Shown here: in pieces, positions 4,378 through 59,745 of the stretch | Position numbering within the stretch: position 1 is the stretch's first letter | Layout of the letters: each line of letters starts with the position of its first letter | Source: Histomonas meleagridis 2922-C6/04-290x | Taxonomy: Eukaryota; Protista; Parabasalia | Reading direction: 5' to 3' | NCBI GenBank assembly: GCA_020184695.1 | Contig: JAANOX010000075.1 | Coordinates: 62,001-126,000, forward strand | Length of the DNA stretch: 64,000 nucleotides | Made by a program: the position numbers and the translations under genes | Notes under the pieces: generated by a model | The model's database searches: none | What the model was told of the DNA's origin: nothing | Seen by the model: the letters and a program-made list of their open reading frames with translations, nothing else

Positions 4378-6800
4378 ATGAAGAAGCAAAAACTATTAAA
4401 TGATATCGAAATTCATCAATCAATCATGCAAACCCTCTTTAGGTTGGCTAAAACAAATATTATAGAATCAGCAAATTCAATAATTGACATTTTTGATGAA
4501 AATCATCCTATTTCATTCAATTTTATATTAGCCCAAACAATATATACAATTTCCATGTTCAGAATGAATGACTTTGATATTTATTCAAAATTTTTAAAAC
4601 AAATTGAAATATTTGAAGAAAACAACAAAATTAATTCAAAAATTTTTGATGTATTTGAAGGTATACTTCTTTCTAAATATTCAGAAGAATCAAAGTATAT
4701 TCTTTATTATCTTTTTGAAAATAAATTTCTTCAGAGTCCAAAGGTTGATTATAAAAGAACCAATGGATGTTTTGCACATCACATGACGCAAGAAGAAATT
4801 AATGAATATTATTGCTATGGAATTAAACAGTATATAAAAAAACATTATGAAGAACTTTCAAAGAATGATTGGGAACTTCATAAGAAATATATTGAAGAAG
4901 GACATAATCCAAAATGAAATAACAAAAATAATTCGAGACGATGAAATTGAAAAACTTCAAGAAATATCATCACAAAATGATTTTGATTTTAATCAAATAA
5001 TTGAACCATCAGTTTATGAAAGATGTGATTTTATTAATCAATATCGGATTACATTAATTGAATATGCAGCATTTTTTTCTTCAGTTAAATGTTTTAAATA
5101 TTTACTTATGAATGGTGCAAAAGTGGAAAACACAGGTAAATATGCAGTTGCAGGTGGAAATGAAGAAATTATTCATTTATGTGAACAAAATCATTCATCA
5201 TTTAAAGATGCATATGAAACAGCAATTAAATTTCATTGTAATGATATCTTTAAATATCTTTATGAAAACAAATTAGAAGATATCAAAAATTTGGAATTTT
5301 TAGGAAAGAAATGTATCAAATGGAACAACTATGAACTCTTTACATATTTGCAAAAAGAAGGAATGGAAATTAATGATGATATTATTAATGCAGCTGCAAG
5401 AATTGGAAATAAATATCTCACAAAATATTTTATGAAAGAGCATCACACTCCAAAAGATATTTTAGGTTATTCATCTAAATCAGGAAATATTGAACTTGTA
5501 AAATACATTTTAGATCAAGAAGGAACTGATATTAATGCTGAAGATATTCATTTGTTTTATTTGAAATTTATTTTAATAATTTGATATTTCAAAATAATAT
5601 TTGGAAATTATTTCAAATATTTAATACAGCACTTATGTGGGCATCTGAAAAGGGTTATACAGAAATCGTTAAATTACTTCTTGAACAAGAAGGAATTGAT
5701 ATTAATGCTATAGATATTTTTTTATTTTATTTAAAATTTATTTTATTAATTTAATATTTCAAAATAATATTTGGAAATTATTTAAATTAAATAGTTCAGC
5801 ACTTATTTGTGCATCTTGGAAAAGTCATATAGAAATAGTTAAATTACTTCTTGAACAAAAAGGAATTGATATTAATGTTCAAAATCTTTAGTTGTTTTGT
5901 TTAATATTTGTTTTGATAATTTGGAATTTCAAAATGACATTTGGAAATTATTTAAATTATTTTATACAGCACTTATTTGGGCATCTTCAACTGGTTGTAT
6001 AGAAATCGTTAAATTACTTCTTGAACAAAAAGGAATTGATGTTAATGCTGAAAATATTTATATGTTTTGTTTTTTATTTATTTTAATAATTTTATATTTC
6101 AAAATAATATTTGGAAATTATTTAGAATACTTGAAACAGCACTTATTAAAGCATCTTATGAAGGTTATACAGAAATTGTTAAATTACTTCTTGAACAAGA
6201 AGGAATTGATATTAATTCTAAAGACATGTATTTGTTTTATTTGAAATTTATTTTAATAATTTGATATTTCAAAATAATATTTGGAAATTATTTCAAATAT
6301 TTAATACAGCACTTATGTGGGCATCTGAAAAGGGTTATACAGAAATCGTTAAATTACTTCTTGAACAAGAAGGAATTGATATTAATGCTAAAAATATTTA
6401 TTTGTTTTCTTTAGAATTTATTTTAATAATTTTATATTTCAAAATAATATTTGGAAATTATTTAAAATATTTAATACAGCACTTATATTAGCATCTTATA
6501 ATGGTTTTATAGAAATTGTTAAATTACTTCTTGAACAAAAAGGAATTGATATTAATGCTAAAGATAATCACTTGTTTTGCTTAGAATTTATTTTAATAAT
6601 ATTGGATTTCAAAATATTATTTGGAAATTATTTAAATTCTTTAAAACAGTACTTATGAAAGCATCTTCAAGAGGTCATACTGAAATCGTTAAATTACTTC
6701 TTGAACAAGAAGGAATTGATAGTAATGCTAAAGATATTTATTTGTTTAATTTAGAATTTCTTTGAATAATTTAATGTTTCAAAATAATATTTGGAAATTA
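4378..6800 (+). CDS. DUF3447-type ankyrin gene with 17-nt-insert repeats; one homopolymer frameshift (~4913); broken at ~6800 by a foreign insertion
   Basis: ORFs 4378-4917 and 4847-5584 join after removing one A (GHNP-NEITKIIRDDEIEKL). Followed by 8 repeat units at exact 170-nt spacing. Confidence 0.8.
5521..6800 (+). repeat. Tandem 170-nt unit = 102-nt ankyrin repeat + 4 x 17-nt inserts
   Basis: aggaa(c/t)tgat recurs at 5521, 5691, 5861, 6031, 6201, 6371, 6541, 6711 (period exactly 170). Confidence 0.97.
5546..5622 (+). other. Example set of four 17-nt inserts (5546-5562, 5566-5582, 5586-5602, 5606-5622) flanking single codons GAA, GAT, GGA
   Basis: gat[attcatttgttttattt]gaa[atttattttaataattt]gat[atttcaaaataatattt]gga[aattatttcaaatattt]aat aca gca ctt reads D-E-D-G-N-T-A-L after removal. 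Confidence 0.9.
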
Positions 6801-17094: not shown

Positions 17095-17739
17095 TTACGA
17101 TGGTAAATTAAATGAATAATGTGCATTAGGTACAATTAAAACACTTGGTGAAGCTATTTCAAAATTAGTTTCACAAATATAAAATACATTATAATTAGAT
17201 GATGTAAAAAAACCAACTGTACGATCATTAAGTGATGGAAAAGTAGTACCAAAATCATATAAATAATAATAAAAAGTACCTGAACTAGAAAGTGAAGATT
17301 GAAGTAGATAATTAACAGTTATCTCTGTAAAATCAGAATTGGGTTGATTGCGTTCAATAACAATAAAAACATAATAATGAGTACCATCTATTGATGGTAA
17401 TGGATGACTTGCATCACGTAATGAAAATTGTTTCAAGGAAAATAAACCAGAAACATCTGAAATAGTAATAAAAGATATTGGTATATTAACACTAATAGTA
17501 GAACCTACGTCTAATGCTAATCGCCTAGTACTGACTTGACTAGGATATAAAATACTAAAAGACTGTGTAGAATAATCTGCAACCCTATCGTTGTTCTTAA
17601 GAACTTCATAAGCACGATCTAAATCATATTTAGACATAGGAGGATTAAGAGGAGGAACCAACTTACGTTGTAACACTCGTCCCTTATTACGTGAATAATA
17701 AGATTCACTAATAGGACCAATGCGATGAGGGTCAAACAT
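17095..17739 (-). CDS. Viral-cassette accessory/structural ORF, unknown function
   Basis: 214 aa, beta-rich composition, 26 nt downstream of the capsid-like gene. Confidence 0.55.
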   Translation of the reverse strand: MFDPHRIGPISESYYSRNKGRVLQRKLVPPLNPPMSKYDLDRAYEVLKNNDRVADYSTQSFSILYPSQVSTRRLALDVGSTISVNIPISFITISDVSGLFSLKQFSLRDASHPLPSIDGTHYYVFIVIERNQPNSDFTEITVNYLLQSSLSSSGTFYYYLYDFGTTFPSLNDRTVGFFTSSNYNVFYICETNFEIASPSVLIVPNAHYSFNLPS

Positions 17740-18498: not shown

Positions 18499-19402
18499 GA
18501 GGCATGGAGCAGGGGGAGTAAAAACTGGTGGAGGAATAGGATACGGTTTTTCATCGTCTTCCGACTGTATTGATTCGGGACAAACATTAATTTTCCAAGA
18601 CGATGCGTTTGTCTAAGAAAGTTTGGAATCGCACATTGTAATATCTAAAAGCGTTAAAGATGTGTTTACTTGATAGTTGTGCATACCATAAAAATAAGGT
18701 TCTCTTTTTTGCTTTGAGGAGACAAACCTCTTTCATTCCTCTAAAAGCTTTAGGAAAACTTGTATATGGCACCGGGCCATGTATATCCCAAACTTGTACT
18801 TTGTTTTATTATTTTTGTTCTAAATTCAGGATGAGTTTCATTTGTCTGCAAGATAGTGTTTAACAGAGCATTTTCCCACATGACGTCATGTGTTATTTTA
18901 TATCACTCAATTTTACAAAAAAATACCTTACAATTCATATTGACTAAATTTTTGAGAAAATCATTATTTTAATTTCAGATTATAAAAATGTATAATTTTT
19001 TAATTTAAACAAAACTTTAAATTTTATTATAGATTTATTCTCTAAGGTATAAATATGTATGTGTATATACAAAATTTTACTTTTCCCTTTGGATCAAATT
19101 TTCGATTTTGAAAAATTTGATAACTTTAAAATGAATGGATCTCCCAAGACCCATGGAAAAACATCGATGTTTTTGAGTGTGATTATATGATTTATTAATC
19201 TAATGATAATTGATTTCTTTTCTTTTTGTCTATATAAATATCGTCATTTTTATGTCGAAAATGATAAGGTAATTATTTGTCCGTTATGGTATTTTAATTT
19301 TAAGTGTGCTAACACATTTTTTTCGTTTGGAAAATTTTACTTTATTTTTGCCATGATCCAAAAATTAACGGTTTTTTCATTTTTTTTCTTTCGGATTTTT
19401 TC

Positions 19403-22400
19403 ATGGAAACAAGTTCAAGTGATCAAAATATTATTGCGCAAATATTAACAGACCTCAAGCATATAATTTTTAATTTGACTGAAAAAAATTTTGATTTATC
19501 TATACAACAAACAATGAACTTGTTTGATTCAAATTCACCATATTCTTTCGATGTTATAATATGTATTTTTGTTTTATCTGCATTTTCATCACTTAGGAAT
19601 GAAAGCGATATATATATTCGCTATTTACAATCAATCCAATCCAAAGAAGAAGAGCTAAACAAAGATAATCCAAAAATCATCGAAATATTTATTAAATATA
19701 TTGCTCAACTTCAAACACAAGAAGCATATTATTTCCTTGAACAGATGATTACTCATAATTTTGTTGATTCAAGTATTACTAAAAACATGGATACTAATTA
19801 TTTCATACATTATCGCTCAAAAAGTGTAACAGATATTAATAGTGTTTCTTATAAAGATGTTTATGCTTTATCATTTTTAGAAAACTTTTCAAAAATATCA
19901 ATGAATGATTTTGAATTGCATAGGAAATATGTTAAAATAGGACATAATCCAAGTGAAATTGGAGAAATAATTCGAAATGATGAAATAGAAAAACTTCAAG
20001 AATTATCATCACAAGAAGACTTTGATATTAATCAAATAATAGAACCATCACTTTATGAAAGATGTTCATTTATTAATCAAAATAATGTTTCGTTAATTGA
20101 TTATGCAGCATTTTTTTCAGCAGTTAAATGTTTTAAATATTTACTTATGAAAAATGCAAATGTAAATAAAACAGGAAAATATGCAGTTGCAGGTGGAAAT
20201 GATGAAATCATTCATTTATGTGAACAACATCATTCATCATTTGAAGGTGCATATGAAGCAGCAATTAAATTCCACCGAAATGATCTTTTTTATTATATTT
20301 ACGAAAATAATTTAGAAGAATTTGATGGATTTGTTCAACCAAATCCACGAATGAATAGAAATACTGATCAATTTTTACGCTTGATTATGAATAATCATAT
20401 TCATGGAACTAACTTTTTGCAATTAATGGAAAATCTAAATCCTTTGGATAACAATCAAATTCCGCAGAATTTAAATGATAAAATAATTAATAAATTAGTT
20501 GATGAATGTATTCACAATGGAAATTATGAAATCCTCTTATTTTTGGAAGATAAAGAAATAGAAATTAAAGAATCAATTATCAATGAAACAGCAAAATTTG
20601 GTAATTTATATCTTATCAAACATTTCCTTCAAAAAAATACAATACCAAAAAATATTTTGTTGTTTGCAACACAATCAGGAAATAATGAACTTGTACAATT
20701 TATACTTGAACAAAAAGATTTTGAAATTGATTTAAATATAAAAGAAATTTCTTTTATTAATTTGATATTTAATGAAAATATTTGGAAATTATTTAGATCA
20801 TTTAAAACGCCACTTATGATTGCGACTGAAAAAGGTTATGAGAAAATAGTTAAATTACTTCTTGAGCAAAACGGAATTGAAATAAATGTTAAAGATATTT
20901 ATTAATTTAATTTCACATTTTTTTGAATATTTTGATGTTTTGATATATTATTCGGAAACTATTTATATCATTTAATACATTACTAATTAAAGCATCTATA
21001 AAAGGTAATATTGAAATAATTAAAATGCTTCTTGAACAAGAAGGAATTGATATTAATGCCAAAAATGTTAATTTATTATGTTCAATGTTTATGAAAGAAT
21101 TTTGATGTTTTAATAAAATGTTTAAAATTTGTTCAAATTATTTTATACAGCACTTATGAAAGCATCTGAAAATGGGCATATAGAAATAGTTAAATTACTT
21201 CTTAAACAAAATGGAATTGAAATCAATATTAAAAATATTAATTAATTTCATATAAATTTGATTTTATTATTTTGCAATTTCAAAAGAAAATTTGGAAATT
21301 ATTAAAATGATTTGAAACAGCATATATATTGGCAACTAAATGTGGTTATATTGAAATAGCTAAATTACTTCATGAACTTGGAAACAATGATATCAATTTC
21401 AAAACTATTTTATCATTTTAATTGAAGTTTATTTTAATGATTTGGTATTTCAACTGAAATTTTGGAAAAACAACACTTATGTTGGCATCAAGAAATGGAC
21501 ATTTAGATGTAGTTAAATTTCTTCTTAAACAAGGAGGATTTGATATTAATGAAAAAGATGTTCATTAATTTCATTTAAAAATTATTTATTTAATTTGCCA
21601 TTTCAAAATAATATTTGGTGTTTGTTTGGGTTGTTTTGGACAGCACTTATGTTAGCATCAGCTAATGGTCATTATGAAATAGTTAAGTTATTACTTGAAC
21701 AAAAGGGAATTAATATTAATTATCAAGTTTATTTATTTTATTTAATGATAATTTAAAAAATTTTATATTTTATAATAAAAAATGGAATTTATTTTAAATA
21801 TTTGAAACAGCACTTATAGAGGCAGTAAAATGTAATAGCAGTGATATTGTTAAATTACTTCTTAAACAAGAAGGAATTGATATTAATGCTAAAGATGTTT
21901 ATCTGCTTTATTTATTATTTATTTCAATAATTTTATGTTTCAAAATGATATTTGGAATATAATAAAAAAATTTATTACAGCACTTATGATAGCATCTAAA
22001 AAAGGATTTTTAGATATTGTTAAAATGCTTATTGAACAAAAAGGAATTAATGTTAATGATAAAGATATTTATGGTATTTTCATAATTTATTTAATACTGC
22101 ATTTTTATATTCATGTGGAAATGGCCACACGGAAATAGTGAAATTACTTCTTCAACAAAAAGGAACTAATGTAAATGATAAAAAAATTTATTTATTTTAT
22201 TTTCTGATATTATAAAATATTATATGGGAATTATTAAAAATATTTTCTACAGCTTTAATGAATGCATCTAAGTTCGGTTATATAGAAATAGTTAAATTAC
22301 TTCTTGAACAAGAAGGAATTAATATTAATGCAAAAAAAATTTATTTGTTAAATTTGATATTTATTATAATAATTTGATATTTTAAAGTAATATTTGGAAA

Positions 22401-23603
22401 TTATTTGAATTGTTTTATTCAGCATTGATATTAGCATCTTTAAATGGTTATGCAGAAATAGTTAAATTACTTCTTGAACAAGAAGGAATTGATATTAATG
22501 CTAAAGAAATTTATTTGTTTTATTTGATATTTATTTTAATAATTTGATATTACAAAATAATATTTGGAAATTATTCAGATTATTTAATACAGCACTTATT
22601 TTGGCATCTCAATGTGGTCATACAGAAATAGTTAAATTACTTCTTGAACAAGAAGGAATTAATATTAATGCTCAAACAGTTTATGTAAATTATTTTATTT
22701 TTGTTTCATTGATATAGTATTTTATTATAATGTTTGGTGTTAATTTAAATTATTTTGGAATACATTAATGTTTGCATGTTCAGCTGGAAATAATGAAATA
22801 GTTGAGTTAATTCTTGAACATAAAGGAATTGATATTAATGCTAAAAATATTATTTTGTTAAATTTAATGTTTATCTTAAAAATTCGAAATTTAAAATATA
22901 TATTTGGAATGTATTTGAATTATTTCAAACAGCATTAATGCTTGCATCATATGCAAATCGTTTGAAAGCAGTTAAATTGCTTCTTGAACAAGAAGGAATT
23001 GATATTAATGCTAAAGATAATATTCGTTTTAAAGACATAATATTTTATAAATGAATTTGATAATTATTTTCATCTTTTGAAACAGCATTTATGATAACAT
23101 CTAAAAATGGTAATATCGATATAATTAAATTACTTCTTGAAAAAGAAGGAATTGATATTAATGCTAAAAACAACAAAGGAATGACAGCAATTTTACTTGC
23201 AGCTGATTTTGGCATGAAAAATATGGTTGATTTTCTTTCTACAATAGAAGGAATCGAATATGATAAAGAAAAAGCAGACAAACTAATTCTCAACCCACAA
23301 CAAAAACATCTTCGCCGTAATCTAAGAAATGTTATTTTCAATAAAGTTGACCATTGTTCAGCTGAACAAACGGGTAGAGATTATCTAAATGATAGAAGTT
23401 ATTTCTTATGCTTAACATGCAAAATTCTTCCTCCTTACTCCATATGTAGAGAATGTGCAAGGGTTTGTCACAAAGGTCATCACATGATGGAAATAGAACT
23501 GACAAATAATCAAGGATTCTTTTGTGATTGTGGTGTTGGCGATTGTGTTTTAGAATGTAAGCTAATGCATACACATAAACACAAAAAGGAAACAGATGAA
23601 TAA
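19403..23603 (+). CDS. DUF3447-type + ~16 ankyrin repeats + C-terminal UBR-type zinc finger; 53 x 17-nt inserts; reconstructed 1,099 aa
   Basis: 4201 nt minus 53x17 (901) = 3300 nt = 1100 codons. Manual translation finds no stop before TAA 23601-23603. C-terminus CSAEQTG...FLCLTC...SICRECARVCHKGH...FFCDCG. Confidence 0.85.
20744..23183 (+). repeat. Ankyrin array with 17-nt inserts; hairpin linkers of 83, 80, 66, 63, 32 and 15 nt
   Basis: 16 linkers counted by hand; each parses as codons plus n x 17 nt (n = 0, 1, 3 or 4). Confidence 0.92.
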
Positions 23604-23700
23604 AAATTAAAGTCTAATATTAATACACATTCTTAGATGTATAAATTAATTTGATGTTAAAAGTATAAAAATGAAAAGATATTATGAGAAAAAAACTTGT

Positions 23701-24426
23701 TTATTCGTATGTCACCTGTTTTGAAACACGGCCAGAAAGAAGAACTACTTCTTTAGCTTGTTCTTTTTTCTCAACCACTTTAGGTTTAGTCTTCTTCTCT
23801 GGACGAGAAATCTTCTTCCTTTTAACTGTCTTTTCAGGTGCAATTGTCTTAAGTCCTTGAGCTGAAAATGCATATGAATTTTTCTTTGCTTTCAAGAGTT
23901 TCTTTTCATGAAGAGATTCAAGAGTCTTCTTGGTTCTCTTTGGAATGAATTGGGGTAATCCCTCATCCATATAATCCTGTAGATATTGTTTGATTTTCTG
24001 ATAACTAATGTATTTGTTGTCTTCTGTTGTAAGATTAAAGATTGCCTCACTAACCCACTTAACATAAATGCTTCTATTTTCCTTCTTTTCAGTCTTTTGC
24101 TTTGTTGACTTCTTTGACTTTGTTGATTTCTCTGTAGTTTTCTTGGTTGGCTTTGTGGCTTTCTTCACCATCTTCTTTGTAGTTGTTTTCTTGGTTGTAG
24201 CTTTCTTTGAACCATCTTTCTTTGTACTAGTTTTCTTTGGGCTTGCTTTCTTTTTATCAGTTGTTGTTGTTTTCTTCTTTGTAGTTGTGGCCTTCTTATC
24301 ATTTGTCTTCTTTTTTGGAACGACTTTCTTTTTGGTTTCAGTCTTCTTTGTTGTAGTTTTCTTGACTTTCTTTTCTTCTTCCTTTTCCTCTTTGGCTACA
24401 GTATCTTTCTTTTTCTGTTCAGACAT
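23701..24426 (-). CDS. Linker histone H1-like protein
   Basis: Lys/Thr-rich N-terminal arm, winged-helix-like core (SIYVKWVSEAI...ISYQKIKQYL...KKTLESLHEKKLLKAKKNSYAFS), basic C-tail. Confidence 0.7.
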   Translation of the reverse strand: MSEQKKKDTVAKEEKEEEKKVKKTTTKKTETKKKVVPKKKTNDKKATTTKKKTTTTDKKKASPKKTSTKKDGSKKATTKKTTTKKMVKKATKPTKKTTEKSTKSKKSTKQKTEKKENRSIYVKWVSEAIFNLTTEDNKYISYQKIKQYLQDYMDEGLPQFIPKRTKKTLESLHEKKLLKAKKNSYAFSAQGLKTIAPEKTVKRKKISRPEKKTKPKVVEKKEQAKEVVLLSGRVSKQVTYE

Positions 24427-41315: not shown

Positions 41316-44045
41316 TTACTTTTGTTGAGAAAATCCAAAACTCCAACAATTGCCCCATTGCGAATTACCCCAACCACCACCGCCAGACGGAGGTCGACCT
41401 TTGTTGCTTCCAAAAGTACTCCCTGATGCCCAACTATTCATTGGATGCTGGGTAGAAGGAGTAGTTGATGCAGCCCAACCATATAATGATGTTTGAGCAT
41501 TAGTTGAACCCCAAACTCTTGACCCTAATTTACCAAATGAATTTCCTGCTTTCCAAGTGCCACAACCTGTTGATTGATTGTTGACATTTATTACACCCCA
41601 ACAATCTTCTGAAGATTTATTAATAATTGGGCGATAATTTTTACTTATACATGTATCTTCTTCTTTAAGCAAATAAACAATTTGGGAATTTTTATTTTTA
41701 GTTGCATAATTTAGTGCTGTTTTATGTATTTTAAAGGATTACCTAATATCATTATTTAATATTATAAAAATAAAATAAACTACATATAAAATAAAATAAT
41801 ATCTTTAGCATTTTTATCAATTGCTTTTTGTTCAAAAAGTAATATTGCTATATTTCTATGACCTCTATCACAAGTATAAATTAATGCCGTTTTAAACTAG
41901 TACAACAAATATCATAAATTATTTTGAAACACAAAAAAGAATTCTTAGAAGCAAGCCCATAATATGTAAAACTTACATCTTTTGCATTGATATCAATTCC
42001 TTCTTGTTCAAGAAGTAATTTGACTATTTCCATATAACCAAATCTAGATGCAAATATAAGTGCTGTATAATCAAGTTTATATTATTACCAAATACTATTC
42101 CGAAATCTAAAATTAATATAATAAATATTATCTTTAGCATTAACATCAATTCCTTCTTGCCCAAGAAGTAATTTAACTATTTCTACGTGATCATTTTGAG
42201 AAGCCAAAATAAGTGCTGTACTAAATAATTGAAATAATTTTCAAATAATAATTTAAAATATTAAATCATTAAAATATTTATTACTTTTAGTATTGGCATC
42301 AATTCCTTCTTTTGCAAGAAGTAATTTAACTATTTCCGTATGACCATTAAAAGAAGCTAAAATCAGTTCTGTACTAAATAATTGGAATAAATTCCAAAAA
42401 ATATTTTAAAACAATAAATTTTTAAATTATTTATTATTTTTAATATTGGTATCAATTCCTTTTGGTTCAAGAAGTAATTTGACTATTTCTGTATGACCAC
42501 ATCTAGATGCAAACATAATTGTATTCCAATTTTTTTTTAAATAATTCCCAGATAATTATTTGACATACCTTACTGTTGAAATGAATATTACTTGTAGCAT
42601 TAACATCAATTCCTTTTCGTTCTAGTAGTAATTTAACTATTTCCACATGATTATTTTGAGATGCTTAAATAAGTGCTGTTTTAAATATTTTATATAATTT
42701 CCAAATATTACATTTAGACCAAATATTTTAAGATTAAACATTATTATTATAATTAATATTAAATGCATCTAGTTTAAGAATTCTTTGAAAAATATCAATA
42801 TAACCTTTTTCACATGCTAATAGAAGTGATTCATTAAATAATATAAGCCAAAATTCTAATTATTAAATAAACATTCAATATAAAAAATAAATTATATTAT
42901 TAGTACAACTTTCATATTCAAAAATTAAATTAATAAGATCCAAATTTCCATATTGGGTTGCAAATAATAAAGTAATCCAGGAATTGGATTAATCTCAAGA
43001 TAGTAGTTAACAAGAAAGAAATTGCCAACTCTTGCAGATTCATTAATTATTTTATTATTGATTTTCATTCCTTCTCCGATTAAAAAATTAAGAATTTCAA
43101 AATTGTCATAATTAATACAAAATTCTCCAAATTTACTAAGATCAAATGTTTTAGGATTAGAATTATTTTCATAAAGATAACGAAAAACATCATTTCGATG
43201 GAATTTAATCTCTATTTCTAAAGTGCCTATAAAAGATATGTGATTTTGTTCACACGAATGAATGATTTCAAGATTTCCACCTGCAACTGCATATTTACCT
43301 GTATTATTGTAAATAGATTTATTTAATATTAAATATTTAAAACAAATAATTGATTCAAAAAATGCTGCATAATCAACTAATCTAACATTTTCCTTATTAA
43401 TAAATGAACATCTTTCATAAAGTGAAGGCTCAATAGTCTGATTAAAAATAAAATTTATTTGTGATGCTTTTTCGATGAGTTTTTCTATTTCATCATTTCG
43501 AATTATTCTTGCATTTTCATTTGGATTAATCCTTCTTCAACATATTTCTTATGAAGGACCCAATTATTACCTGAAAGTTCTTCATAACTATTTAAAAATA
43601 TATTACAAAATGGATCATTGTTATTTTTTATTTTATTTTGTGAATCAGTTTTATAATATGCAAAATATTTTGATTGAATATTTGTTGTGATATTTGAAAC
43701 AATTAATTTTTTCTTAATCATTTTTTCAAGAAGATAATTCGATTCTTGTGTTTTTTCGTCCGGGGGGCTTTGTGTAAACATTTCAATAAGCTTTAAATTA
43801 GTGAACTCTTTTTCTTTTGTTTGTATTGCTTGTAAATATATAAAATATGTTTCATATTTTTCTTTCATAGAAGCAAAAGCATGTTTAACAAAAGAACAAA
43901 TAATATTATTACATGGATAAATAAAATAAGTATCAAGTAGATTTATTGTTTGTTGAACAGAAAAATTTATATTTTCTTTGTTTATATCAAACACAATTTG
44001 TTCGAGTTGTTGTAGCCCTTGAATTGAGGTGAGTTTATTGGACAC
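41316..44045 (-). pseudogene. DUF3447-type ankyrin gene with 17-nt inserts and Gly/Trp-rich tail; probably inactivated
   Basis: Frameshifts near 43520 and 42970, in-frame TAA near 42666, and a TAG micro-exon near 42100. Eight insert-containing linkers at 41721-42895. Confidence 0.7.
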
Positions 44046-57226: not shown

Positions 57227-59745
57227 ATGAGTTTTCAAAGTTTTTCAAACATGAATGAATTGGAACTTCTCCAAAGAATTCATCAAGTCATCACTAATTT
57301 AAGTAGAGAAAATTTTGCACAATCACTAAGTTCAATACTTGAAACAATTAAATCTCAATATTCATATTCTATTTCCTTAATTATCAGCCAAATTATATCT
57401 TCACCATTTACAATTCTGGAGAAAGATTTTAATTTGTATATTGATTTTATGAGAGAAATTGAAAAATTTGAAGAAATTAATAACATTACACCAACAATAT
57501 TCGAAATATTTAAAGATTTTACTCTAGATGGAGACATACATGACGCAAATTATTTTTTTGGAATCCTATATGAACAAGATTTAATTGATCTTCGCACTAT
57601 TCAAAGTTTAAAATGTCCATATTTTGCCCATTTTATATCAAAAGAATACCTTAAACCAAGTAATAACGTTCCTTTTACTAGTTATATCATTGACAATTAT
57701 GAAGAACTTTCAAAGAATGATTGGGAACTTCATAAAAAATATATTAAAGAAGGACATAATCAGGATGAACTTGCAAAGATAATTCGAAATGATGACATAG
57801 AAAAACTCCAAGAAATGGCTTCACATCCAAATTTTGATTTTGATCAATATATTGAACCATCACTTTATGAAAGATGTGATGTAATAAATAATGAAAACAC
57901 TACACTAATTGATTATGCAGCATTTTTCGGCGCGATTAATTGTTTTAAATATTTGTTAATGAATGGTGCAAATGTTGAAGATACAGGTGGATATGCAATT
58001 TCAGGTGGAAATTTTGAAATTGTTCATTTATGTGAACAGAATCATTCATCTTTTTATGGAGCGTTTGAATCAGCAATTGTATTTAATCGAAATGATATTT
58101 TTTATTATCTATATGAAAATTATTCTAAAGGGAATAAAATTTGTAGACTTAGTAGTCTCGAAGAATTAGGGGTGTATTGTGTTATGTATAACAATTTTGA
58201 AATTTTATCATTTCTAATTGAAAAAGGTATGAAAATTAATGAAAAAATTATTGCTCAAATATTAAAAACGGGAAACTTATTCCTCTTTAAATATTTATGT
58301 AATGAAAATCAATTTCCAAAAGATGTTTTAATTATGGCATCAGAATCAGGAAATGTTGAACTTGTTCAATATATATTACAAATAAAAAACATAGATATAA
58401 ATTATAAAAACATTTTTTTGTTTTATTTAAATTTTGTTTTAATATTTCGATGTTTCTCAATATTATTTGGAAATTATTTAAATTATTTTATACAGCACTT
58501 ATTTATGCATCTAAATTTGGTCATCCAGAATTAGTTAAGTTCCTTCTAAAACAAACTGGAATTGAAATAAATGCTAAAACTATTTCTATATTTAATTTGC
58601 AATTTTATGTAAAATAAATTTCATGTTTCAAAATAATATTTGAAATTTAAATGAACTATTTAATACAGCACTTGCACTTGCATCATATAATAATCATTGC
58701 GAAGTTACTAAATTACTTCTTGAGCAAAAAGGGATTGATGTTAATTGTAAAAATGATATTTCACTTAATATTATGAAATTTCATATTAATATATGGAATT
58801 TATTCAAGTTTTTTGATACGCCAATTAATTTAGCATGTAAAAGAGGTCATATTGATATAGTTAATTTACTTCTGATACAAAAAGGAGTTGATGTAAACCT
58901 GCAAAATATTCGTTTATTTGTATTAAAGTTTATTATTATAATTTTTTATTTGAAAATAATATTTGGAAATTATTTGATTTATTTAATACAGCACTTATAT
59001 GGGCATCATCTAATGGATATTCTGAAATTGTTCAATCTCTTCTTAAATGTGAAAAAATTAATGTTAACATTAAAAGTATTTATATATTTAATATAATATT
59101 TTCTTTACAAATTTTCTATTCATCGAAAATATTTGGGGATTATTACATTTATTATTTACTGCATTATTCGGAGCATCTCAATACGGTCATATAAAGATAG
59201 TGCAATCACTTCTTGAACATGAAGGAATTGATATTAATTCAAAAGATATTTAATTAATTCATTTAATTTTCATGAAATCAATTTGATGTTATTAAATAAT
59301 ATTTGGAAATTATTCAAATTATTTTATACAGCACTCATATTTGCTGCTCAGAAAGGTAACGTAGAAATAGCTCAATTGCTCCTTTCACAAAATGGAATTG
59401 ATATTAATGCTAAAGATATTTGTTTGTTTTATTTAAAATTTCTTTTGAATTTATAATGTCTCTCTATAATATTTGGAAATCTTTTAAATTATTTAACACA
59501 GCTCTTTCTTGGGCTGCTCAAAATGGTCACACTCAATTTGTTAAATTACTTCTTTCGCAAGAGGAAATAAAAACAAATATCAAAAATATTTATTTGCTGG
59601 TTTTAATATTTGTTTTAATATCAAAAAATTTCAAAATAATATTTGGAAATAATTTTTAATACTTCAAACAGCATTTTCACTTGCAACCGAAAATTCACAT
59701 GATGAAATTGCTAGACTGCTCGATGTAACATCTAATCTCTCTTAA
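57227..59745 (+). CDS. DUF3447-type ankyrin gene with 31 hairpin inserts; reconstructed ~663 aa
   Basis: 2519 nt minus 31x17 (527) = 1992 nt = 664 codons, no internal stop by manual translation. Hairpins NKDGY, NDEGD, NKFGN, SNSGF, DNDGY, DKNGN, NNKGQ. Confidence 0.85.

Follow-up and report, generated by a model that had tools for sequence, protein, structure and literature searches.

Tandem 17-nucleotide inserts separated by single codons interrupt an ankyrin-UBR gene of Histomonas meleagridis and are absent from its RNA at four linkers

The stretch of DNA analyzed here, referred to below as the window, comprises 64,000 nucleotides (nt) of the genome of Histomonas meleagridis 2922-C6/04-290x (assembly GCA_020184695.1, contig JAANOX010000075.1, positions 62,001 to 126,000), and all positions are given within it. 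Its GC content is 29%, and on its forward strand, from 19403 to 23603, it carries a gene of 4201 nt in which a chain of ankyrin repeats is interrupted, linker after linker, by short inserts of constant length. Read without removing anything, the gene offers a 5′ open reading frame (ORF) of 500 amino acids (aa), which begins at 19403 and meets a stop at 20903-20905, and a 3′ ORF of 170 aa, ending at 23603, that contains ankyrin repeats and a UBR box, while in the stretch that separates them the ankyrin helices are found in all three frames. The interruptions lie in the β-hairpin loops, 15 of which have the codons of their D-x-x-G-x motif split by inserts of 17 nt, always in phase 0, with up to three single-codon exons per loop. 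In one of these linkers, for example, the order AAA GAT-insert-CAC-insert-GAT-insert-GGA-insert-AAT ACA would be read, after removal, as K-D-H-D-G-N-T. The same regularity is reported by TRF in the form of 20-nt modules, that is, an insert plus a codon.

A parse carried out independently from fixed ankyrin landmarks returns the same number of inserts and the same series that the preliminary description of this gene had given, namely 53 inserts distributed over 15 linkers as 3,4,4,4,3,4,4,4,1,3,4,4,4,4,3. The arithmetic is likewise reproduced: 53 inserts of 17 nt make up 901 nt, and their subtraction leaves 3,300 nt with no internal stop, corresponding to 1,099 codons and a stop codon. The protein rebuilt in this way contains all three of the junction peptides predicted for it (DHDGNTLLIK, DIYGITALMIASK, and EDDGNTALILASQCGHTEIVK).

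All 53 of the parsed inserts measure 17 nt and conform to the T-rich consensus RTTTA-N8-ATTT, T making up 58% and A 33% of their bases. At position 1, 37 of them have A and 14 have G; positions 2-4 are T (position 3 in 50/53), A prevails at position 5 and occupies position 14 in 43/53, and positions 15-17 are T, the last of these being T in 50 and C in the remaining 3. The ends of the inserts correspond to none of the terminal dinucleotides of spliceosomal introns (GT-AG, GC-AG, or AT-AC): GT-AG ends occur in 0/53, none finishes in AG, and the majority begin with AT. For the insert of linker 9, which was verified in RNA, the boundary at 22075/22076 admits only TA...TT or AT...TT. A branch motif of the CTAAC type is found in none of the 53, and the conserved A at position 14, situated 3 nt from the 3′ end, is a candidate branch point. 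The four slots of a linker each possess their own consensus (ATTTATTTGTTTTATTT, ATTTATTTTAATAATTT, ATTTCAAAATAATATTT, and AATTATTTAAATTATTT), which is common to different genes. A conserved RNA fold was sought in 17 linkers and none appeared (consensus of -0.8 kcal/mol, with 7 weak pairs and one compensatory change), Rfam gave no match over the window, and a loose regular expression for introns of the Trichomonas type (GTAYGT...CTAAC...AG) gave, in the window, only chance-like matches inside ORFs.

The preliminary description had noted the absence of stops and frameshifts in the rebuilt frame. Taken alone, this is no better than chance, because a dynamic programming search for stop-free paths through the gene, with skip lengths of 10-25 nt, finds such a path for every length not divisible by 3, at a cost of 31-40 skips (for 17 nt the minimum is 35), and the rebuilt ORF by itself is therefore weak evidence. 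More informative is the spacing of the ankyrin cores, which is 170 nt ten times, 153 nt three times, 167 nt once, and 119 nt once (one core being at 22968). These periods equal 102 coding nt (once 99) plus 4, 3, or 1 times 17 nt, the single period of 167 nt arising from an exon, the one before linker 7, that is one codon shorter; and none of them is off by 1 or 2 nt, despite an identity of only 68-84% between repeats. In the rebuilt protein the repeats return to the ankyrin register of 33/34 aa with G-x-T restored, and the residue spacing of the sole uninterrupted hairpin of the gene (AKNNKGMTA, ~23166) is equal to that of the rebuilt hairpins. In addition, a GGN triplet (GGA, GGT, or GGG) stands ahead of the last insert in 12 of the 15 linkers, within spacers whose G content is 5.6%.

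The pattern of variation between repeats supports the idea that the exonic parts behave as selected coding sequence. Identity at codon position 2 is 0.82-0.88, compared with 0.67-0.86 at position 3, and is also higher than at position 1; the framework codons of the ankyrin repeat keep identities of 0.8-1.0; in the isolated G codon the GG is retained and the third base varies; and the exons contain no stop or indel in spite of the divergence of the repeats. The isolated codons 1 and 2 have a nucleotide identity of 0.33-0.51, similar to that of the variable ankyrin codons embedded in exons (1, 6, 9, 10, and 13). A dedicated generator of diversity acting on the isolated codons was considered and, though conceivable, set aside as unnecessary, since the variation of these codons does not exceed that of the variable ankyrin positions that exons contain.

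The RNA evidence comes from public runs of the same organism that contain the stretch, namely DNA from two samples of 2021 and RNA from four samples of 2023 and one of 2013, from which the contigs of three RNA runs (X3, X4, and X5) and one DNA run (X1) were compared with positions 19300-23700; these are assembled contigs, not reads. In linker 9, 17 nt are absent at 22075 in X3 and X4, at full local depth and with 0 letters between the two sides, and in X1 the deletion of this insert, the single one tested in DNA, is found in 0 of a depth of 645. In linker 1, record 23 of X5 joins 20746 to 20804 with 6 letters between (GAT GGA being predicted), for a net 51 nt out. Record 11 of X3 and record 18 of X4 do the same in two further linkers: they join 21406 to 21463 in linker 5, with 5 letters between and a net 51 nt out (the prediction is GAA GGT, and its final T also matches the genome), and 21559 to 21636 in linker 6, with 8 letters between and a net 68 nt out (here the prediction is AAA GCC GGT, whose final T again also matches the genome). 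In these four linkers the RNA pieces otherwise agree with the window throughout, with 0 differing letters, and their outer boundaries are base-exact. Inserts are thus removed at the RNA level in units of 17 nt, with single codons retained, for 11 of the 53 inserts in 4 linkers, the letters retained in linkers 9, 1, 5, and 6 numbering 0, 6, 6, and 9, as predicted. What is expected of an intron, presence in genomic DNA and absence from RNA, is found at four linkers for the RNA and at one insert for the DNA.

Elsewhere in the gene the RNA contigs are of a more partial nature. In linker 3 a paralogous RNA contig skips 80 nt with 12 letters between, for a net 68 nt; in linker 8, record 19 of X4 carries 77 unaligned letters ahead of 21974, which is consistent with splicing, and record 13 of X3 keeps 21917-21973; in linker 14, record 26 of X5 has 30 non-collinear letters ahead of 22926; and over 23144-23700 the contigs of the three RNA runs are collinear with the genome. 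Across the family, the loose ends that extend past the exon ends read GAT GGA AAx ACA GCA CTT in the RNA runs and are insert-like and AT-rich in the DNA run. Record 13 of X3, which keeps inserts on its left and lacks the insert on its right, was tried as a splicing intermediate and discarded, given that two populations of isoforms with a 102-nt exon in common may be fused into one contig by a k-mer assembler. At 23237 the three RNA runs all have A where the window and the DNA run have T, a synonymous change from CTT to CTA that would be explained most simply if different strains had been used for RNA and for DNA, although RNA editing may also be considered. As a separate observation, an RNA contig of 1,559 nt reaches ~860 nt upstream of 19300, across an apparent intergenic region, and could be a long 5′ leader, read-through, or carry-over of DNA in the RNA libraries.

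From purifying selection on the segments between inserts, the preliminary description had inferred that the full protein is made. The discrete units of 17 nt, the selection on the exonic parts, seen in the variability of codon and ankyrin positions, and RNA without inserts at four linkers all stand; they lead as far as a frame-restored transcript for the parts covered by RNA, which is made, because contigs of three runs lack the inserts at those four linkers. The exons and linkers of the gene are given in Table 1, together with the other genes of the window that have the same arrangement.

Table 1. Exons and interrupted linkers of the gene at 19403-23603, and other interrupted ankyrin genes of the window
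Feature	Position	Strand	Content and basis
First exon, 448 codons	19403..20746	+	N-terminal family domain, DUF3447 (~20165-20314), first uninterrupted ankyrin-like repeats; ORF and Pfam
Linker 1: 3 inserts, single codons GAT, GGA	20747..20803	+	Parse; RNA contig X5 record 23
Linker 2: 4 inserts, single codons CAC, GAT, GGA (KD-HDG-NT)	20897..20973	+	Parse
Linker 3: 4 inserts, single codons AAT, GAT, AAA	21067..21143	+	Parse; paralogous RNA contig
Linker 4: 4 inserts, single codons AAA, GCA, GGA	21237..21313	+	Parse
Linker 5: 3 inserts, single codons GAA, GGT; slot 4 empty (GGA AAA ACA contiguous)	21407..21463	+	RNA contigs
Linker 6: 4 inserts, single codons AAA, GCC, GGT	21560..21636	+	RNA contigs
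Linker 7: 4 inserts, single codons AAT, TAT, GGA	21727..21803	+	Parse; unspliced RNA contig X3 record 12
Linker 8: 4 inserts, single codons ATT, TAT, GGA	21897..21973	+	Parse
Linker 9: one insert, ATTTTCATAATTTATTT (or 1 nt leftward)	22076..22092	+	RNA runs X3 and X4 versus DNA run X1
Linker 10: 3 inserts, contiguous pair TCT GAT, single codon GGG	22186..22245	+	Parse
Linker 11: 4 inserts, single codons GAT, GAT, GGA	22339..22415	+	Parse
Linker 12: 4 inserts, single codons GAT, GAT, GGA	22509..22585	+	Parse
Linker 13: 4 inserts, single codons TAT, AGT, GGT	22679..22755	+	Parse
Linker 14: 4 inserts, single codons AAT, GAA, GGA	22849..22925	+	Parse
Linker 15: 3 inserts, single codons AAT, GAT	23022..23078	+	Parse
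Last exon: two ankyrin repeats joined by the uninterrupted hairpin AKNNKGMTA, UBR box (23388-23543), stop codon	23079..23603	+	Pfam; RNA contigs
Second DUF3447-ankyrin gene, four-insert linkers	~4847-6800	+	Six exact 170-nt periods
Ankyrin gene with 17/3 linkers	~41900-44045	-	Same linkers
Ankyrin gene with 17/3 linkers	57227-59745	+	Same linkers

The protein encoded by the rebuilt frame has a DUF3447 domain followed by ~17 ankyrin repeats and a C-terminal UBR box. In the 500-aa 5′ piece, Pfam finds Ank_2 with 55.3 bits (cut-off 27.3) and DUF3447 with 38.2 bits (cut-off 26.9), and in the 170-aa 3′ piece Ank_2 with 34.4 bits. The intact zinc finger of the UBR type that had been reported at the 3′ end is borne out by the same scan, in which zf-UBR covers residues 100-151 of the 170-aa ORF with an E-value of 7.3e-9 and 36 bits (cut-off 25.2), and extends over positions 8-58 of the 69 of the profile, in a stretch rich in Cys and His that is uninterrupted. 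The connection that had been drawn from this finger to the E3 ligases of the N-end rule does not follow from the domains present, because no RING, HECT, or other ligase domain is found by Pfam in the two pieces searched, the 500-aa 5′ ORF and the last 170 residues, and the product would be better described as an ankyrin-UBR-box protein.

As for its relatives, the N-terminal domain has its best named homolog in Histomonas meleagridis itself, followed by DUF3447 proteins of Tritrichomonas foetus, and an architecture of DUF3447 plus ankyrin repeats is common in Tritrichomonas and Histomonas; the Tritrichomonas foetus homolog that was examined (P0018, L003) has, unlike this gene, no interrupted linkers. 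The closest UBR boxes found are those of Histomonas proteins of the “zinc finger in N-recognin family,” built of tandem UBR boxes. Among the inspected matches of the last 170 aa, in a representative-library search that ankyrin repeats swamped, no combination of ankyrin repeats with a C-terminal UBR box appeared, the three matches led by the UBR box being tandem-UBR proteins and not ankyrin-UBR proteins, and a sequence search of the PDB with the same residues gave only designed or natural ankyrin repeats.

The arrangement is not peculiar to this gene. In the gene at 4847-6800, the inserts are 81-95% identical between repeats and the isolated codons 1 and 2 only 20-60%; the genes on the plus strand at 57227-59745 and on the minus strand at ~41900-44045 have periods of 170, 153, and 3 x 170 nt. 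One linker of the latter shows TAG at the position of an isolated codon, and this copy may be defective or in need of a different parse. When the 64-kb window is scanned with a weight matrix built from the 53 inserts, the matches are concentrated in the four ankyrin loci, with background elsewhere, and ten other large ORFs that were scanned are uninterrupted ordinary genes, among them a GH36 alpha-galactosidase, an RRM protein, a glucosidase II beta, and EF-hand proteins; within the window, the inserts do not have the spread over many unrelated genes that is seen in mikrocytids and heterotrichs.

Outside the window, another H. meleagridis assembly (GCA_020186115.1, contig WSYJ01000186.1, L002:9388-11400) contains ankyrin repeats, of which two are separated by 170 nt and whose linkers include stops, in a region where the public annotation calls no gene. 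Related DUF3447-ankyrin genes, with the 17/3 layout in their first linkers, are also found on ENA metagenome contigs (L001, L004, L005, L006, and L007, with a GC content of 21-30%), which probably derive from several related parabasalids; their inserts have diverged interiors and begin with GT more often than in this gene, and in L001, L005, L006, and L007, from two ENA studies, the length of the inserts is unchanged. The JGI metagenomes, when searched for exact copies of a conserved 26-nt motif of the linkers, gave 0 matches.

Since the slot-specific consensus is common to all repeats and genes, it implies that the ancestral repeat would already have held four inserts before its amplification within and between genes, and the 53 copies would for that reason represent few independent events. 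Amplification would then have been followed by occasional, exact losses of single inserts, and in the linkers with 3 or 1 inserts it is in fact single inserts that are exactly absent, the codons being left contiguous. Linker 9, with three empty slots and GAT ATT TAT GGT contiguous, fits either the exact disappearance of three inserts from a sequence resembling that of linker 8 or one deletion of 51 nt, the second route being possible because the first insert begins with ATTTAT.

Considered as a whole, these data are best read as those of one expressed nuclear gene, whose inserts are present in the DNA and removed from the RNA, and whose product is a DUF3447-ankyrin-UBR protein, a reading to which we would assign a probability of about 0.8; the removal of all 53 inserts would give the predicted protein of 1,099 aa. 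Several points weigh against it: the inserts verified for this gene are 11 of 53, and through assembled contigs only; in the multi-insert linkers the retained letters are known by their count and not by their identity; among the contigs of the three RNA runs, none spans the distance from the start codon to the UBR box; unspliced sequence is present in RNA, at lower depth (7 for record 12 of X3, versus 38 for the spliced contig); and the RNA and DNA runs probably come from different isolates, because of the A versus T at 23237. This last difference, together with the many paralogs of the family and their cross-mapping at a likeness of 92%, would speak for inserts missing at the DNA level, whether by elimination in part of the nuclei or by their absence from the isolate of the RNA study, or for RNA that came from uninterrupted paralogs. 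Such an origin seems to us very improbable. An internal eliminated sequence should be absent from the DNA of the expressing nucleus, yet the DNA run keeps the insert at full depth and, at 645-fold, has no contig with a 17-nt deletion; the unspliced form is present, with 0 mismatches, in the same RNA libraries (records 12 and 13 of X3); conservation of the inserts extends to the Histomonas assembly and to metagenome contigs; nuclear dualism is not known in parabasalids; and, with respect to paralogs, the spliced RNA pieces follow this gene through three exons in a row with 0 letters that differ otherwise. It could also be argued that the array is a decaying pseudogene or a satellite-like repeat, which would yield no more than the 500-aa product and perhaps a UBR peptide with a start of its own, and that the reading in codons is over-fitted, as a stop-free path can be forced at many skip lengths, the public Histomonas annotation has no genes over a comparable array, and unspliced RNA contigs occur. 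However, this is scarcely credible in the face of RNA from which whole multiples of 17 nt are missing and in which as many letters are retained as predicted, of exons with no stop or indel among repeats ~30% diverged, of a variability by codon and ankyrin position that is that of a selected protein, and of an invariant insert length. The idea that the inserts are kept in the mRNA and skipped by the ribosome (translational bypassing) has in its favor the absence of splice signals and nothing further, and can practically be dismissed, as the dominant RNA contigs are without the inserts that were verified and there are no matched take-off and landing codons. In other words, pseudogene, DNA elimination, and translational bypassing are all contradicted by RNA contigs without inserts and a DNA run with the insert.

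The nature of the machinery is a more delicate question. The inserts would be excised independently of one another, through a reaction that recognizes short motifs at their ends and their constant length. We tentatively favor a strongly derived spliceosomal splicing of minimal length, in which branching might occur at the conserved A of position 14, because a fixed length of 15-17 nt is a known signature of the introns of heterotrichs and mikrocytids (PMC10245619), although we would put it at somewhat under even odds: 0/53 inserts end in AG and most begin with AT, the CTAAC-type motif is absent from them, a branch A placed there would stand unusually near the 3′ end, at 3 nt, and neighboring inserts only 3 nt apart would crowd any large machine. 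A dedicated, non-spliceosomal removal, either by an endonuclease that reads AUUU-type ends and measures 17 nt, with the help of an RNA ligase, or by excision directed by guide RNAs, is nearly as probable an answer. It would agree with the RT...TT termini and an AG end in 0/53, with the lack of the parabasalid branch motif in a group whose canonical introns are strictly GT-AG with a long 3′ motif (PMC12316389), with the restriction of the inserts to one gene family in the window, and with a slot-specific consensus common to genes, which would fit a sequence-specific recognition. On the other hand, the consensus fold of the 17 linkers contains neither the bulge-helix-bulge nor the IRE1-type structure of endonuclease/ligase introns, nor any other conserved fold (-0.8 kcal/mol, with one covarying pair), no candidate enzyme or guide RNA came to light, minimal spliceosomal introns are known for just such a narrow, fixed length (PMC10245619), and the free divergence of the insert interiors on the metagenome contigs speaks against a long guide. 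In its most specific form, that of a novel non-spliceosomal excision system that measures length, recognizes AUUU-type ends, and is restricted to codons of the binding loops in an ankyrin family that has expanded, the proposal is rather unlikely. Under it, as the single-codon exons are frame-neutral, their optional inclusion or skipping might produce loop variants from one gene.

If the expressed gene with RNA-removed inserts is accepted, it represents a new extreme of gene interruption, in which intervening sequences of 17 nt without GT-AG ends are arranged in tandem and single codons serve as exons. This bears on the lower size limits of intron and exon and on the minimal information needed for exact excision from RNA, a question that becomes experimentally approachable in a culturable organism. 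There is also a practical side, since a gene family of this kind is invisible to standard gene callers, as the comparable H. meleagridis array without called genes indicates, and the published proteome of this poultry parasite probably misses a family of large proteins with ankyrin repeats; once the family has been annotated, the transcriptome and proteome data already in print could be examined anew.

With regard to the neighborhood of the gene, a convergent ORF on the minus strand (23701-24426) encodes a lysine-rich protein of 241 aa that resembles a linker histone and has no Pfam match at 1e-5; the RNA contig over it has a word depth of 247, versus 12-38 for the contigs of the ankyrin gene, and reaches across the 3′ end of the latter. 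On the other side, also on the minus strand, lies an ORF of 214 aa (17095-17739) with no Pfam match at 1e-5.

With respect to what is known of introns in this lineage, those of parabasalids (types A and B of Trichomonas vaginalis) are GT-AG, measure at least 23 nt, and have a long conserved 3′ motif, and in Trichomonas there are ~60 per genome, usually one per gene, with a conserved 5′ motif and an ACTAA-type branch motif (PMC12316389). The H. meleagridis genome paper describes introns as scarce, with no gene carrying more than one, and says nothing of ankyrin genes or of 17-nt inserts (PMC8529796). A full-text search of the literature, most subscription journals lying outside it, gave no account of inserts of 17 nt, of exons of one codon, or of ankyrin genes interrupted in this way in Histomonas, Dientamoeba, or trichomonads. 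The Trichomonas introns of type B belong to the same broad lineage and resemble the inserts in their very small size, which begins at 23 nt, and in the poly-T that fills most of the space between their motifs (PMC12316389), whereas the 17-nt inserts have none of the Trichomonas intron motifs and number 53 in one gene. The micro-exons of animals and plants (3-30 nt) show that exons of one codon can also be spliced into mRNA, but these sit between long canonical introns and need exon-definition factors, while here up to three consecutive exons of 3 nt lie between inserts of 17 nt. Removal at the RNA level without GT-AG ends, as found here, is shared with the non-conventional introns of euglenids and with the endonuclease/ligase introns (tRNA bulge-helix-bulge introns and IRE1 targets). 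Both of these rely on a secondary structure that draws their ends together, and their lengths are variable; the inserts, unlike them, have a fixed length and no conserved structure is predicted for them.

There remain the tiny introns of fixed length, such as those of mikrocytids and heterotrichs, which carry GT-AG ends. These measure 16-17 nt in mikrocytids (Mikrocytos mackini) and 15-16 nt in heterotrichs (Stentor), and with the introns of chlorarachniophyte nucleomorphs (18-21 nt) they are likewise removed from RNA, very narrow in length, U-rich, and provided with short conserved end motifs (PMC10245619). The inserts fall within the narrow range of 15-17 nt, with 53/53 at 17 nt and the length kept on diverged metagenome contigs. 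The differences are that the mikrocytid and heterotrich introns are reported to be spliceosomal and occur in many kinds of gene, whereas the inserts are found in the window only in ankyrin hairpin loops, in tandem, 3 nt from one another and with 0/53 ending in AG. Thus, in its end signals, its tandem order, and its single-codon exons, the array departs from every tiny fixed-length intron that has been described, and if the machinery that removes it were not the spliceosome, it would be categorically new.

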